From Calcarisporiella thermophila CBS 279.70 (lineage: Eukaryota > Fungi > Calcarisporiellomycota), in the NCBI RefSeq assembly GCF_041956535.1, contig NW_027192195.1:1003762-1067761 (forward strand): a DNA stretch of 64,000 nucleotides, written 5' to 3'. The notes under the pieces were generated by a model that saw nothing but the letters and a program-made list of their open reading frames with translations, had not been told where the DNA came from and searched no databases. Below are positions 12,521-24,501 of the stretch, in pieces (position 1 is the stretch's first letter; each line of letters starts with the position of its first letter). Made by a program: the position numbers and the translations under genes.

Positions 12521-13282
12521 TTAGACGATGACCATCAACAACGATAAAATGAACATAAAGTAAGTGATAAAGCTCAGTTGCCATCGCTCTGCAGTCCCAC
12601 TCCATGATGCCATCGTTTTAGCTAACTCATCTGTCGTTGGCGCCACCGTCCGCAGGCTAAATATGCACCGTTCTTCCGCGGAGCTGTCGAACCCACTCTC
12701 TAGCATCAAGCCAAAAGTTTCCTTGCCCTCGTGGATCAATTTGGTTGCATCTACCCCATTTGTGCACGACGACCGGAGCTTCAGAGTCACGTTGCAGGGC
12801 GCGTTGAATTGAGGATCTGAGCTGAAAAGTACCGCATTTGTCGTGGAGAGGGGGCATGGAAGCACAATGGTGACATTGTAAGCTTGTGTACTCTCAGGTA
12901 GGGTCGGGTAAGTCCAGACTTCAGTTAAGATACGATTCGTGGAATTGAAGCCCGTGGGTGAAGGATAACCCGAGCTAGAGGAGGCGGTGGTTATTAGAAG
13001 GGTGGTTGGAAAAGGCAGTGAAGGGGTGATGGTATTAGCCGTTGCCGCCTGGGATGAGGTTGGGGTGACCAAGGATGGCGATGTTGTTTGTGCGATGACA
13101 TTATTATTGTTAGAAATCGATGTAGGAGCTGCGGTGGGTGTGGCCGTCACAACCTCCCTCAATATTTCTTGAGCTTCCCCCTGCTGGCGTCGGTATTCGA
13201 TTACATTGGCATGAGCTTCAAAAAAAGCTATGGAAAAGAAAAGAAGAATAAGAGTAGCTCGAGAGAGTGACCTTCGACTCAT
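12521..13282 (-). CDS. Secreted or cell-surface Ser/Thr-rich protein, possibly GPI-anchored
   Basis: 253-aa single ORF with a hydrophobic signal peptide, T/S/P-rich stalk, 4-Cys domain and hydrophobic C-terminus. Confidence 0.7.
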   Translation of the reverse strand: MSRRSLSRATLILLFFSIAFFEAHANVIEYRRQQGEAQEILREVVTATPTAAPTSISNNNNVIAQTTSPSLVTPTSSQAATANTITPSLPFPTTLLITTASSSSGYPSPTGFNSTNRILTEVWTYPTLPESTQAYNVTIVLPCPLSTTNAVLFSSDPQFNAPCNVTLKLRSSCTNGVDATKLIHEGKETFGLMLESGFDSSAEERCIFSLRTVAPTTDELAKTMASWSGTAERWQLSFITYFMFILSLLMVIV

Positions 13283-14272: not shown

Positions 14273-15899
14273 CTATTTTGTCTCCTTCTCGGCCAGATCA
14301 ACCGCTATTTTGAAAGCCCCAATCAGTGCCGTGGTTTGTATCTTCTCTGTGCCACCCTGTGCCAACCGATATTCTAGTTCTGCGAGTTTTTCGAAGAGAT
14401 AGATCCTCGCTGGGCCGGGGAATCCGATTTGTTCAACAAACTCGTGCACCTCTGTGATGATATCCTGCAGTGCCATGCCCTTCTCAGTTTTCATCTTCGA
14501 AATATCTATTCAAAACGAAATGAGTCAAAGGAAATAGAGTAAGCCGCGCCTCCCTCGGGTCCCGGGAATCAAGAATACTACTCACTGGAGTATGCAGTTG
14601 TGAATTCGTTCTGGAGCATCCAGTCGACAATTTGCTGAATATCACGCGGGTGAGGATTTCCTGTACAGCTATAGATTTCAGATTCGTCGATGCGGTCGTA
14701 GGCAGCGTGCGCAGACTACCGGTTTATACCCGATCCAAATAAATACAAAGATTAGAGATGGATGACATCCGAGGAATTCAGAGTTGTTAGAAGCTCTCTA
14801 CCTGTAGTACATTGAGAGCTCGTCGCATGTCACCATTCGTCAGTTTAAGCAGTGCTCTCTTCCCATCCTCTGTTATGTTAACCCTAACCATATAGGAAAT
14901 AAATTGTCAAGTGGCATGCCAAGGTATCGCTTGGGATATTTCAATACCCTTCTTGCTGAACTATATAATTTAAGCGTGATTCGATCTGGTTAATCTCGAG
15001 AGGAGCAAAGCGAAATCGTGTGCATCGAGACTGGATGGCAGGGATTATTTTTGAAACATAGTTGCAAATGATGCAGAATCGAACGTTTCTGGTATATTTC
15101 TCGATAACTACCACAAGAAATGTGGGTTAAGAGGCAACCTCACCGTCCCTATCAACACAAATATTCACCTCTCCTCAGAGCAGCCTGTGCAGCCTGTGTC
15201 ATAGAATCGGCCTCATCGAGGATGATAAGTTTGAAACCCGAACTAATATCCATGGAGACTGGTCAATACTACGGAGCTACTCTCCAGAAACCTTATTTAT
15301 GTTCACCTGAAGATCGTGCGAGTGCTTGCAAATCCTTTGATCTGTTCTCTTACAACATCAATTCCACGCTCATCGGAAGCATTCAACTAGAGTAGCAGAA
15401 TATTAAAAGTAGGAAAATGAGGTTGGGAACATGGCTCTATTTTACCTCCAAAACCATGGATCTCCATTGAGCCCCGTATAACTTGCGTGCACATGCGAGA
15501 ATAGTAGAGGTTTTACCCGTACCAGGGGGACCATAAAAAAGAAGATGTGGTAACCGATTCTCATCAATAAATCGCTCGACTACAATAAATAAAAGAGACA
15601 AATAATGTGAGCACTGGATTAACGAGCGTGCCATCACGACGATAGTAGAGAAAAGAATTACTTGTAGAGGTGATATCCCTTTGCGAGACCAGATCTTCGA
15701 GTTTCTGAGGGCGATATTTCTCGACCCTAACGTTGATTGGATATATTATTCATTTATTCTATCTAATGGAATGTAGAAATAAATTGGTGAATTACCAAGG
15801 TAAATGCCCATTTAACATTGGCTCTGTCATTTTTCCTTTTCCTTTATTCACGCTGGAAATGGAGTTTGCGTTCGTATCGATATCCATTGAATCTGCCAT
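14273..15899 (-). CDS. RFC3: Replication factor C small subunit (yeast Rfc3 / human RFC5 type), multi-exon
   Basis: LPW|[71 protein letters not shown]. Confidence 0.93.
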
Positions 15900-16120
15900 T
15901 GTGAATTTATTTTCTGGATCTACCCCTATTTTTTTTAGAGTAATAATGGTGTGACGCGCTCGAAAAATTAAACGCGTTAACTTTGGCCGCAGCATTTTGA
16001 CCGAAGGATACCCTTATTGCCCCTCTTGACCTTTCAACTCATGCTACATTTTGCTTCTCATCCTCTCCATGATTACAAACTCTCCAATCTAGAGAGCTCA
16101 CAGGAGCAATCATGCCAGCC
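15809..16120. repeat. Direct segmental duplication, copy A (RFC3 5' end, promoter, decayed MPA start)
   Basis: Collinear with 22203-22543: CTGGAAATGG, TGACGCGCTCGAAAAATTAAACGCGTTA, CCGCAGCA, CTCTCCATGATTACAAACT, ATGCCAGCC. Confidence 0.85.
15952..15979. promoter_or_regulatory. Twin MCB-type (ACGCG/ACGCGT) G1/S elements upstream of RFC3
   Basis: ACGCG at 15954 and ACGCGT at 15972, 55-80 bp upstream of the RFC3 ATG. Confidence 0.7.
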
Positions 16121-16462
16121 AAGTTTTTTTTCTTGAACACTAATTGCCTCTCTAAGATCTAGTCGTTGTATGAATTTGGTCGTCACATCATTCCAAACTG
16201 ACTTTGGTCAAGGAATTAATGCATAATCTAGGCACTCCTTACCCAACATCACCGAAAACCTCTGCTGAAATAGCGCGGTTCTCTACTTTTCAAATCCCTC
16301 ACAGTAGTGAACAATGTCACTGAACATTGGTTGTCCTTAGGAAGGATGTCATTCTAGGTGCAATTCTTGTTTGCACGCATACAATTTCATCAGATGGACT
16401 TTATTTCAAAATTTTCTATGACATACAATCTATATTTAGTTCAAATAAATATACAGGGTCTA

Positions 16463-19373: not shown

Positions 19374-20086
19374 TTATGAACTAAAGAAGTTTTGCTCGGT
19401 GAGGCGTTGCACAGCCTTGGTGCTCTTCACGGCCTCATTGAGTTTGACCAATGCCGGGGTCTTTTCGCTGTTGACAATGGTCTGGAATACTTCCTCGCCA
19501 AGGACATTCTGGAGCAATCCAAGGATGGCAAACGCATGGATGTCAGCGACAGTGAATTTGTCCTTAAGGTAGTGACCATTGCTGGAGTTCTTCTTGAGGA
19601 GGCGCTCGTGATAGGGAATGAGCTTCTCAGCACTTTCTTGCAGAGTCTTCTTGCCGGCTGCCTTCTTCTCCTCCTCCTTCGCAAAGAAGACATGATGCAA
19701 TGCGGTGGCAAGCAAGTCATTCAGCGAATCAATCACCGACTCCACAAAGGCAGTTTCATCGCTATCGTCCCCGAGCAGGCCGTGTTCACGCGCGAGATAC
19801 CGACTGATGGCATTGGATTCGGCAATTTCAACGCGCTTGCCATCGGGCTTGGTGACATAGAGGATAGGGAGACGGCCGAAAATGGTGTCGGGTTTCTCGG
19901 ATTCCCAGCTCTGGGGATGCTTAAGGGTATAATCGGCCTAGTAAAAGGAGGGAAGCGGAATTGGTGGTGTTGGAAAGGCAGTCCAATGAAAGTAAATACA
20001 TTAACGGTCTCAAGGAGGATGCGAATGGTGCGAGAAAGGCCAGCAACGTTGAAGTAGTAGAGCTCGTATTTGTTTTGAGAAGCCAT
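19374..20086 (-). CDS. Glutathione S-transferase (intron 19938-19999)
   Basis: YELYYFNVAGLSRTIRILLE, FGRLPIL, IAESNAISRYLAR, FTVADI; TATAAATA upstream at about 20155-20161. Confidence 0.9.
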
Positions 20087-20850
20087 TGATATTATTCTTT
20101 TGGTTCTTTTGTGAGGATTGGATGGGGGAAAAAATACGCAAACCCAAGGGGGGTATTTATAGCTAACTAGAATCCATGCAAAAAGCTCGGATCTGGATAA
20201 AATCAAAAGCCAGTAATGATTATTAATGCAATGACAATTCATTTTCACGGCCACCGTAATGAATCCATTTGAAGGACGCTTCTTACGGTAGCACAGCGTA
20301 GGAGTCCATCTTAAATCAAAAAAATATTGGATATTATTCCCCAGCGTGGTTTGCTCTGAAATCTGTCTATACAAAAGTCTAGAGGGTTCTTCGGTGGATT
20401 AGTAATAAGATTTAATGACGCAGATAGTCACAAGCGAGAAATTATCCCTTTCTTCAAAGCTATGCAAGAGAGTTTCTTGACTCACCCTTTGCATAACCCC
20501 CAACGTTGAGAACGCTTTGGCGCATTCGAGTTTAATTCCACTTTGGATCTGAAGAGTTACTTCAAGGCTCCAAACTGGATTTTGTATGGTTATTGTTTCA
20601 ATATATGGTTTGGAATGTTGAACAAGTTTGATATTCCTCAATAAGAAGGAATTATGCACTGTGCTTTGTGGAAGAGTGCTGTTCTAAAATGTAAGGAGGT
20701 GCCTGAGGAGAGAAAATAGGCACTAGGTCCTTCACACTACCATGGATATTGACCTTTGGCAAAGTGAAAACAGGTCTCCTTAGAGAAAGAATTCCCAATT
20801 CAGATACATCGCGTTTTTGTAAAAGAATGGCATTTGTATTTACATTATGA

Positions 20851-20912
20851 TTCATTCATTCATTCATTCATTCATCCTTTCATTACAGGTACCGAGCTAT
20901 TTGCCTCGGTAC
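20851..20912 (-). mobile_element. Possible 3' end of a LINE/SINE: stem-loop followed by a (GAAT)n tail
   Basis: Perfect 8-bp stem GTACCGAG/CTCGGTAC (20889-20912) with an 8-nt loop, next to (TTCA)6 at 20851-20874. Confidence 0.4.
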
Positions 20913-22202
20913 ATTGGTCAAGGTGGTGATTTTATACAAGCACTGACCCCTACGACATAAATGAAATTCTAATGAAGGTACTTTTTAAGGAATCGGGGTT
21001 GTCCAAATAGGATTAGTAGCCGCATAATCCGTGTAGGTTTAAAATAAATTGGATATCTACAAATAGAACGAGTTTGCTGGCTTGTGATGTTTTCATTGGC
21101 TTCTATAGCCGTAGCTACTAACAGAATGTACGTTATGTATTCAACGATTTGAGCCCATAGCAAGTTCGCCTGGCTTATTTCTAATAAAACAGGCGTGCAA
21201 TCATCCTCTTGCAAATATCCTTTCGAATATCATCTCATTTAGTCATCTAAAAACTACTTTACGCGCTTTATTAAAATTGAATCGAGCAATTTTCATTAGC
21301 ATACACAATATGTATTCTCCAGATCAATATGGCTTGGTAATTAGCTAATTTCGAAGCTCTCTTCAATTCTCTATCCGAAATATCTAGCCATATTCTTCGG
21401 TTAGTTAAAGCCGTAGTAACAGATATAGAATATTAAACTAACTTGAGATCTTGGGGGACAATTTTAAGGGAAAGATCTCCTTACCACTGTTCTTAGACTA
21501 TTTATACCTCATCCTATGACTTCTTCAATGTGTAGCCTCTAACACGAGTGAGGAGGTGAAAAAAATAATCTTATCTCATTGAGAATGGTGGCTAATATCT
21601 CGCTATCGCATTATCTGTACGGGACCGACGTTTCGATGGTTGCGAGCAAAGTATATTCAACTTAGTCTTATTGCATTGTATTATAGATTTGTATCTCCAG
21701 AAGGAGAAATACGAGCTTTTTGCGAATACCATCTATTGTAGCAGGCAACCAAGACCAATCCCTAACACACTAAGGGATAATGAAGATTGGTTTGGTTACG
21801 CAATAACGATGATTTGGATCGGATCGAATGCCAGCCCACGTCTGAGAATGGTCCCGTAAACATGGACTCTTCTCGTGCTTGTAACAGTTATTTTGAGTAC
21901 ATCTTTTCCTAAAGGAATAAAATCCACTCTCAAGATTCTTCAATTTAAAGTAAGTTTATCACATCCGTTGGTTAGCACTTTATCTAAATTAGCGGTAGCA
22001 TAAATTTGTCCATAGATTCAACATCGCTCATCAATGCGATGGTACTAGATCCGCATATATGCCAATTCAATCGACCATTTCATCTAGTATTACTAGCATT
22101 AGTACCATGGTTTTTGGAGATTGCAAGATTCACAGCATTCACTGGCCCAGCTGTGTATATCAATAAAAAATGTGGAAAGTAGGATATTGCTAAAGCTGAT
22201 AG

Positions 22203-22283
22203 CTATTCAATGCTGCATCCGTCCTTTTTCTTTTATTTTCTGAAATTACTGGAAATGGAATTCACATTTGCGACCAAGTCCAT
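22203..22283 (-). pseudogene. Relic of RFC3 exon 1 in duplication copy B
   Basis: Minus strand reads MDLVANVNSISSNFRK* versus RFC3 [16 protein letters not shown]; after a frameshift, KRTDAALNS versus KMTEPMLNG. Confidence 0.75.
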
Positions 22284-22543
22284 TACTGCAGCGCAAGTGA
22301 ATTATGGATCAAATATAGCTTATATTTTGATATGACGCGCTTGAAAAATTAAACGCGTTAGCACTGTCCGCAGCACATTGGCCGGAGAATCTTACTATTT
22401 TCTCGAATCACTTAACCACTCAACTTACAGAACTTGCATAATTATTTCTTTCCTCACTGTTTTTTCTCCCTTCCCCCTCCCCCCCCTCTCTCCATAATCA
22501 CAAACTGTCATATCAAGAAATAGCAGAAAAAAATATGCCAGCC
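22203..22543. repeat. Direct segmental duplication, copy B (decayed RFC3 start, twin-MCB promoter, intact start of the Siva-like gene)
   Basis: The 28-nt core at 22333-22360 matches 15952-15979 at 27/28 positions; offset 6381 bp. Confidence 0.85.
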
Positions 22544-23159
22544 GGGATTTCTCGCAAGCGCTCCTCTCCTCTCTCCCTTTCTGATAAATCACCAATGTCT
22601 TGGAAACGCTTCCATCATGTGGCTGCCGAATCGCTCGCGAAACCTCCTAAATTTCGCAAACTCGACGAATCCGATAGCGAGTCTGGGGATGATGGGATGT
22701 GTGGTAGGTTTCCGCTCCGGATCTCCCTTAATCACTCTCGAGGTGGACATCCATTGATCAAGACTAATGTTCTACTCGATCTAATGTATAGATGAACCAA
22801 ACCGTCTCCTCCGCATTCCAAAATCGCGATCTCATGCCCGCTCGCCTCGCATTCGTCCCCAGCATCCTCACATCCCTTCTAAATTAAATGGGGCAACCAA
22901 TTGTGCAGTTTGTTATCGTCAAAGGTTGTTTACGGCCACATTTACTCGCTGCGATAAATGCTCAGCTGAAGTGTGCATGGTGTGTGTGCGAGGCTGCGAT
23001 GCATGCAGGGGTGCTGTATGTAGTCGATGTTGTGTGGAGATTCCTGAGTAAGAAGCTTATATAAAATCACTTTAAATGAGACGCTAATCTTCTTCCGTAA
23101 TGTATAGAAATGACGATGTGCTAGTATTGTGTCACGGGTGTAAATTAGCTCAGTCTTAG
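22535..23159 (+). CDS. SIVA1-like zinc-finger protein, 158 aa (exons 22535-22703, 22792-23047, 23108-23159)
   Basis: Splice phases are consistent. C-terminus CAVC-x12-CDKCSAEVCMVCVRGCDACRGAVCSRCCVEIPENDDVLVLCHGC follows the Siva six-CxxC pattern. Confidence 0.75.
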
Positions 23160-23546
23160 GCGATTGCTCTAGGCGCTTAAATGTTAGTGGAACGCGTGCC
23201 CCCTTTTTTGTGAAGTTTATCCCTCTTATCCTTAATCCTCTTCTCTTCCCTCCAATGCCCCAATTACGCTCTTTTCTGTATATCCCCACTCCTTACCTCT
23301 CTGTTTTCTTTTCTCCGGGACTTCTTGTTGATCCGTTGCTATAAACCCTTTTTCTTTTCTTTTCTTTTCTCTTTTTTTTTTTTCTCTCTTACTCTGCATT
23401 ATATAATACCAAACACAATATAATACATATATGTATTGAAATAAAATATTCTTTGTATTTATCCATTTTAGCATGGAAATAGCGAGACAGTCACAATGGT
23501 CTAATATGGAAAGCGTATAATGTAGAGGGAATGGGAGAGAGAGGGA

Positions 23547-24501
23547 CTATGAGGTTGCCCGGTAGGGTTCATAGCGATGCCGAGTCATTTCTGGATCATC
23601 TCTGGGATGCCCTCCTCGAAAACATTCGTTACAATACAGATCACCGTCACAGTCATGACATCGAATGGTTGCGTCTTCGTTACATATACCTAGGGTGTCA
23701 AATGATTTGAAAGAGTAGATGCTTCGTAAGTCCATGATCCCGCCTCCGTGAATATGCAGGCTTATCTTCAAGGCAAGATAACTTACAACACCAAGTATCA
23801 ACCTCATTAGGTCGTATCTCCTCTATATCCAAAGGCTCCGGAGGAGGTCCCAACTCGCTGCCATCTCCGACTTCTTTTTTACCTCCACCTACCCGTGTTG
23901 CAGCAAAAGTAGGGGTATCTCTGAAAAGTTTTTGAAATCGTTCGGCCAGCTCATCGTCTTGTTTCTCTGCAATATCCTTGTATTTCCTTTCGATGGCCAC
24001 CTCATCATTTGCTTGTGCAAGAATCTCAGAAGTCTCATGGTTATCAGCGCTGTTATTAATATCTTCACCTAGAAATGTTTCGATAGCGCGATCGAGCTTC
24101 GAATTAGGGGGATGGGTAATGAGCTCAGAATCCAAATCCTCTAGCAAAGAAGAGTCGGAAAGTAATCTTTCAACCTAAAATTGGATGGAATTAAAGACTC
24201 TTAAATAGTAAAATATCCAATTTCAGACAGTATACCTCATCTAAATCCTCTTTGTCGGCCTCTGGAGGAGTCGATTGAGTTTTCGAGTTGTTAGGCTGTG
24301 GGCCAAAGAGCTTGGTAAATCGGTTTATCAATTCATCATCGCTACATGTAACAAAATTAAAAGTATAAATTAAAACATCCAATACGTAGCAAAAAGTGAA
24401 TAGTTAAAACACCTGAGTTCTATAGGTTTACCAGATGAACTGGTTTGCACGTTAACCACTGTTAATTGCTCTATACGCCTGCGGAAATCATCATCAGACA
24501 T
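23547..24501 (-). CDS. ZFYVE19/ANCHR-like protein (C-terminal B-box-like zinc finger), 4 exons
   Basis: EILAQANDEVAIE and WC|CICNEDATIRCHDCDGDLYCNECFRGGH; no FYVE domain seen. Confidence 0.75.

Follow-up and report, generated by a model that had tools for sequence, protein, structure and literature searches.

A divergent, probably Siva-family zinc-finger gene beside a duplicated and split RFC3 promoter in Calcarisporiella thermophila

The window, a 64,000-nt stretch of contig NW_027192195.1 of Calcarisporiella thermophila CBS 279.70, holds a small three-exon gene for a Siva-like zinc-finger protein, an intact RFC small subunit gene, and two copies of a short unit that carries 5' parts of both genes. 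The features of this region are listed below, in window coordinates; those without a strand are given as such.

14273–15899, minus strand: RFC small subunit gene of the yeast RFC3/human RFC5 type (hereafter RFC3), intact and multi-exon
15791–16129, no strand: duplicated unit, copy 1 (RFC3 kept, Siva side dead)
15952–15979, no strand: twin MCB-like core, copy 1, ~60–80 nt upstream of the RFC3 ATG
16063–16162, plus strand: decayed 5' leader and start of Siva, with an ATG at 16112, the same first three codons, and a stop after 16 codons
16463–18380, minus strand: gene of the MFS sugar-transporter family, between the two unit copies (5' end not fixed)
19374–20090, minus strand: glutathione S-transferase (GST) gene, between the two unit copies
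22186–22552, no strand: duplicated unit, copy 2 (Siva kept, RFC3 side dead)
22186–22310, minus strand: relic of RFC3 exon 1, aligned with 15791–15920 (~63% identity, interrupted frame; 0 of 1000 shuffles reach its score)
22333–22360, no strand: twin MCB-like core, copy 2 (ACGCGC at 22335, ACGCGT at 22353), ~180–200 nt upstream of the Siva ATG
22535–22703, plus strand: Siva-like gene, exon 1 (residues 1–56; basic patches, SP sites, and an acidic stretch; no family match)
22704–22791, plus strand: intron 1 (88 nt, GTAGGT...TAG, phase 1)
22792–23047, plus strand: exon 2 (residues 58–141; CxxC pairs 1–5 at 22902–23030; Pfam Siva E 0.011 alone)
23048–23107, plus strand: intron 2 (60 nt, GTAAGA...TAG, phase 2)
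23108–23159, plus strand: exon 3 (sixth CxxC at 23130–23141; TAG stop)

The three exons of the Siva-like gene sum to 477 nt (158 aa plus the stop codon) in consistent phases, and both introns are of the GT–AG type, each with a CTAAT/CTRAY-type branch site. A public protein, P0001 (XP_069254404.1, C. thermophila VTP21DRAFT_9517; 158 aa, annotated as 'uncharacterized protein' and forming a singleton cluster), holds the translations of exons 1, 2, and 3 in sequence order; thus, an independent annotation agrees with the three-exon model. The first-pass annotation of this DNA had proposed a phase-consistent three-exon gene of 158 aa, and this is borne out by the exon arithmetic, the GT–AG introns, and the identical public model, such that the gene is almost certainly real. 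It is present as a single copy in the 28-Mb genome. The exons were queried one at a time, and full-length analyses were run on P0001. Tail-to-tail with the Siva-like gene lies another gene (23547–24501, minus strand), the last exon of which matches an ANCHR-like B-box (PF22586, E 2e-14).

The C-terminal part of the Siva-like protein carries six CxxC pairs, which start at residues 94, 110, 118, 125, 133, and 150 and are separated by gaps of 12-4-3-4-13; a 4-3-4 spacing is also found between the middle CxxC pairs of human SIVA1. In Pfam, the best family for P0001 is Siva (PF05458; E 0.00099, 19.3 bits), with residues 88–155 aligned to profile positions 105–170, so that the C-terminal six-CxxC pattern claimed earlier is present and falls on the Siva profile. 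Siva is also the sole match of exon 2 (E 0.011, 15.9 bits), and both scores miss the Siva gathering cut-off of 26.2 bits. Other zinc-finger families rank behind Siva, FYVE_2 far behind (E 1.5 and 0.12); in the Pfam check suggested earlier, Siva is thus first in rank, with no better zinc-finger family, at a score below the curated one. By ESM Atlas features, exon 2 lies closest to three clusters of animal Siva proteins (0.81, lead level), and the nearest to the full protein are two unnamed ascomycete clusters (0.91 and 0.87), with a chytrid cluster, 54% of the members of which carry PF05458, also among the nearest. The named Atlas matches (10 of 10) share one family or clan. The structure closest to the Atlas model of the protein is a chordate Siva, at a TM of 0.42 that is below the usual fold threshold; our own single-sequence AlphaFold model has a pLDDT of 43 and is unusable. 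Word searches with exon 2 and P0001 gave no alignable relatives, phmmer with exon 2 against 1.84 billion representatives retrieved the protein itself and, apart from it, just two long repeat proteins, no metagenome sequence matched P0001, and the best E-values of a PDB sequence search were only 0.24 and 1.1. A PF05458 search of the C. thermophila genome itself gave no match anywhere, a result that is uninformative as a negative.

The protein resembles animal SIVA1 and the PF05458 family in being small, with a C-terminal Cys-rich region of six CxxC pairs, but differs in that the match is limited to profile positions 105–170 and lies under the curated cut-off. Residues 1–93 have no Pfam match at E-values up to 5, and profile positions 1–104, which comprise the amphipathic helix and the death-domain homology region, are not matched by the protein. 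The earlier identification of the zinc-finger region as Siva-like stands, on signals that are weak but consistent (Pfam, Atlas features, and Atlas structure all place Siva first), and true homology to Siva is likely from these comparisons. Because the curated cut-off was missed and the N-terminal comparison failed, we file the protein as a probable divergent member of the Siva family rather than a proven one.

The sequence at 22333–22390 matches 15952–16009 (83% over 58 nt, E 7e-9). No second match of this kind exists in the 28-Mb genome, and the promoter of the Siva-like gene is confirmed as a copy of the RFC3 promoter. The copied segment exceeds the promoter, and includes the dead RFC3 exon 1 (22186–22310). 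Its extent was set by piecewise alignment against 1000 shuffles, none of which reaches the score of 22488–22552 against 16063–16129 (the Siva leader and start codon). Beyond the unit there is no significant similarity; the RFC3 body and Siva exons 2 and 3 have left no relic that could be detected. A first alignment had placed the duplication at 21985–22790; this span was rejected, as piecewise shuffling leaves 22186–22552 alone significant. To the left of promoter copy 2, the stretch 20385–22185 is AT-rich and single-copy, with a (TTCA)n run near 20850; it lacks a long ORF, matches nothing in Rfam, and shows no detectable remnant of RFC3.

The two copies lie 6.4 kb apart, with the MFS and GST genes in between. 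Both copies carry both flanks, and therefore the ancestor had RFC3 and Siva head-to-head on either side of one ~360-bp intergenic region; such an ancestral pair within the Calcarisporiella lineage is very probable. A short duplication around an inserted 6-kb block and a duplication of the whole pair followed by deletions are indistinguishable here, because only ~350 bp are still alignable. Segmental duplication with reciprocal loss can split a bidirectional gene pair, and the arrangement is like such a case: the two copies are collinear and diverged, and in each one gene is intact while its partner survives as a relic.

The two copies share a 28-nt core in which ACGCGC and ACGCGT lie 18 nt apart, and which is identical at 27 of 28 positions, compared with about 63–77% in the flanks; a 24-nt core has exactly two occurrences genome-wide with up to three mismatches allowed. 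The twin MCB boxes proposed in the first-pass annotation are thus present as paired sites, only one of which is a perfect ACGCGT (22353), the other being ACGCGC (22335). The chance of such conservation is P 1e-4 to 6e-4 per site, or 0.04 to 0.24 over ~400 sites; across all positions, the conservation of the core is only modestly significant, and it could stem from gene conversion. A further perfect ACGCGT occurs at 23192–23197, 33 nt past the Siva stop codon.

SBF-family factors, which are kept across fungi, recognize the CGCG core, and the MCB box is ACGCGT (PMC4862756). In a small, hand-picked set of C. thermophila genes, ACGCG sites were counted no more than ~350 nt from the start: PCNA has four, RFC2 three, an SBF/MBF-like gene two, and RFC4 one, and the RAD18 promoter has four. 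The expectation is ~0.3 per 350 nt (at the rate of the window's left part, where GC is lower), and two control genes (GST and the 12524 gene) have none. The clusters at PCNA, RAD18, and RFC2 uphold the earlier view that MCB-like sites are a replication-gene promoter element in this genome. The promoters of RAD18 (L010:1829–1919) and PCNA (L009:1235–1409) both contain an overlapping ACGCG–ACGCG as well as further ACGCG sites, and the overlapping arrangement recalls the fission-yeast MCB2 site. KilA-N/APSES genes are present in the genome; an E2F search of the genome was empty, as was its control. The Siva and RFC3 promoters are like G1/S promoters under MBF/SBF in having paired ACGCG sites 60–200 nt upstream of the start in a genome that encodes KilA-N factors; unlike in established MBF/SBF promoters, the binding factor is not certain, given that zygomycete fungi may also keep E2F. 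Because ACGCG clusters mark replication genes and KilA-N/APSES genes are present, we infer, as a fair reading, a G1/S-type control of the Siva-like gene, and the promoter sequence tips the balance slightly toward G1/S-biased expression. Two paralogous KilA-N/APSES-like genes with similar N-termini were found at L020 and L022, the former adjoining a run of N; we take both to be Bqt4-like.

The RFC3 neighborhood in other fungi was surveyed at loci drawn from metagenomes and from exon-level homologs (n = 15 with usable upstream flank), in which we looked for CxxC arrays and for matches to the zinc-finger region. The sample includes Mortierellaceae and Mucorales-like loci; Endogonales, Umbelopsidales, and other Calcarisporiellales are not knowingly included. 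A Siva-like neighbor was detected at 0 of the 15 other fungal or fungal-like loci, by scans that could miss a finger more broken by introns. In Mortierella polycephala, Dissophora ornata, and a third, Mortierellaceae-like contig, the neighbor is a tandem VTT-domain gene, and in two Mucorales-like contigs (assigned from sequence) it is an unrelated tandem gene. RFC3 is head-to-head with ubiquitin–RPS31 in three basidiomycete-like loci (L037, L039, and L041), each with two perfect ACGCGT boxes upstream of RFC3, 16–19 nt apart, a spacing as in C. thermophila. The remaining neighbors look like ATP2, ARPC3, or CLASP genes from their translations, or are PPR, EB1, AAA, or RanBP-zinc-finger genes. 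In L043, we discarded a phmmer match (E 0.14) that lies 700 nt upstream of RFC3, in the 5' part of a gene with a long ORF of HEAT-repeat/CLASP-like appearance. Paired CGCG sites are present at several of these RFC3 promoters without a Siva neighbor, and therefore the element is RFC3's by origin, with Siva a lineage-specific sharer. Judged from gene order in this sample, the RFC3–Siva pairing is a lineage-specific neighborhood. Of the claim that Siva was ancestrally head-to-head with RFC3, what survives is a pairing in a recent ancestor of this genome, attested by both relics; an old pairing does not, and the synteny proposed as a check in related fungi was detected at none of the 15 loci.

Fungal Siva proteins have been noted before: S. 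pombe SPBC26H8.13c carries the annotation 'Siva family protein' and is recorded as conserved in metazoa (PMC9290682), and overexpressing the region of this gene extends chronological lifespan (PMC8246873). The 2014 paper that defined the PCNA/RAD18 role stated that a counterpart of SIVA1 exists in higher eukaryotes only (PMC4068132). Our literature search found no functional studies of fungal Siva members and no link of SPBC26H8.13c to RFC3 or MBF; SPBC26H8.13c is absent from the list of genes co-bound by Cdc10 and Yox1, with its presence on the array unconfirmed (PMC2726434, Table S3). The C. thermophila gene is like SPBC26H8.13c as a little-studied fungal gene of the Siva family, a likeness of annotation and not of compared sequences. 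The novelty that the first-pass annotation implied for a fungal SIVA is therefore lower, given the annotated S. pombe gene (PMC9290682) and the chytrid Atlas clusters with PF05458: fungal Siva is not new, and the C. thermophila gene probably adds one more divergent member to a family already known.

Human SIVA1 binds RAD18 via residues 40–58 and PCNA via a divergent PIP at 83–96 (Q85, I88) (PMC4068132). Neither these two regions nor the death-domain homology region are recognizable in the fungal N-terminus, and the region equivalent to residues 40–58 cannot be aligned. A motif scan of the Siva-like protein found no QxxILMV, neither a strict nor a relaxed PIP, and no APIM, in agreement with the earlier remark that a clear PIP box is absent; the sole Q-x-x-F pattern sits within the zinc finger. 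The gene had been proposed as part of a PCNA-pathway module, and this proposal loses its footing because the human RAD18- and PCNA-binding segments fall outside the matched part (profile positions 105–170). A PCNA/RAD18 role is possible because both partners are encoded in the C. thermophila genome; nothing in the protein's own sequence, as read from motifs and alignments, supports it, and it is very unlikely that the Siva-like protein bridges PCNA and Rad18.

Alternative readings concern both the identity of the protein and the meaning of its promoter. The zinc finger may be a lineage-specific Cys-rich one (FYVE_2/rabphilin-like, B-box-like, or RING-like) that is Siva-like merely in CxxC composition, given that every Siva score is sub-threshold, that Cys-rich patterns yield chance matches, and that the match is confined to the C-terminal 68 residues of a protein without an alignable relative. 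Against this, the HMM, the language-model features, and the predicted structure all place Siva first (the last two being one source), and the 10 named Atlas matches agree on one family or clan; FYVE_2 fits much less well (E 1.5) and the protein lacks the basic R(R/K)HHCR patch, whereas the size (158 aa, vs. 173 for the profile) and the C-terminal position of the finger agree with Siva. We therefore regard an unrelated finger as unlikely. It is less easily dismissed, if still less probable than the reading preferred here, that the gene is Siva-like and that the twin boxes of copy 2 are uninformative on timing, reflecting gene conversion, a general growth promoter element, or an unseen leftward transcript over 20400–22180. 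Paired CGCG sites 16–20 nt apart occur at other fungal RFC3 promoters whatever the neighbor (L037, L039, L041, and L118), the inter-box spacer is conserved as much as the boxes, as a conversion tract would also give, and the adjoining 1.7 kb on the left lack an explanation; yet the conserved block and the motif pair match exactly in position, flank identity drops to about 70% or less on both sides, and no gene or RNA family was detected in the left stretch.

The first-pass annotation went further, and read the locus as a module for replication or damage tolerance that is both ancient and conserved: a fungal Siva would share its regulation with the clamp loader and link Rad18 to PCNA, the role of human SIVA1 (PMC4068132). 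The twin MCB-like core kept beside Siva after the death of RFC3 on copy 2, and the presence of PCNA and RAD18 with the same promoter element on both, are consistent with such a module, and the human PIP is itself divergent, so that a fungal equivalent could elude a consensus scan. Against an old role of this kind stand the RFC3–Siva adjacency at 0 of 15 other fungal loci and the position of the human PCNA- and RAD18-binding segments, which fall in the N-terminus where the fungal protein is without a match; the lack of a strict or relaxed PIP or an APIM, with the lone Q-x-x-F inside the zinc finger, also counts against it, as does, weakly because its presence on the array is unconfirmed, the omission of SPBC26H8.13c from the Cdc10 and Yox1 list. 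We consider the ancient module quite improbable. A broader version, in which fungal Siva-family proteins are G1/S-expressed replication or damage-tolerance factors that contact PCNA or Rad18 via an unrecognized surface, is likewise improbable.

The preferred reading is that of an intact, single-copy SIVA-family zinc-finger gene left by a split RFC3/Siva pair with its MCB-like core kept, which, taken as a whole, has a reasonable probability. In a recent Calcarisporiella ancestor, the Siva gene and RFC3 would have faced away from each other across a single ~360-bp bidirectional promoter. The pair would then have been split by a local duplication or rearrangement, giving two copies around the MFS and GST genes; each copy kept one gene and a decayed 5' stub of its partner. 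The twin core has stayed nearly identical between them, which would be explained most simply if MBF/SBF-type factors still drove both genes, and the Siva gene would probably be expressed with replication genes in growing cells. In the protein, the low-complexity basic and acidic N-terminus with SP sites is, from its composition, probably disordered and nuclear-targeting, and the C-terminal module, which would hold three zincs, may act as a protein-binding adaptor, as described for animal SIVA proteins; a partner in the ubiquitin system is a family-based guess.

Siva-like proteins occur across fungi (in the S. pombe annotation and Atlas clusters) and have attracted almost no functional work. 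To these the locus adds a testable hint, in the form of a probable G1/S-type control kept under selection, and directs attention to SPBC26H8.13c for the ancestral function. It is also a natural footprinting case, in which a bidirectional promoter was split and a cis-element outlived one partner on each side. By itself the locus is no proof of an old PCNA module; if Siva were linked to replication, the retention of the core beside it would be the first genomic hint that the family's ancestral opisthokont role lay with the replication fork and not with apoptosis.

Elsewhere in the window, a single-exon gene at 12521–13282 (minus strand) encodes a Ser/Thr-rich protein of 253 aa (public singleton P0004), which has hydrophobic stretches near both ends and no Pfam match. 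Over 38000–60000, GC content rises from ~0.44 to 0.55–0.69 around genes with long exons, which encode an XPG-family nuclease, a homeodomain protein, and PEP carboxykinase.
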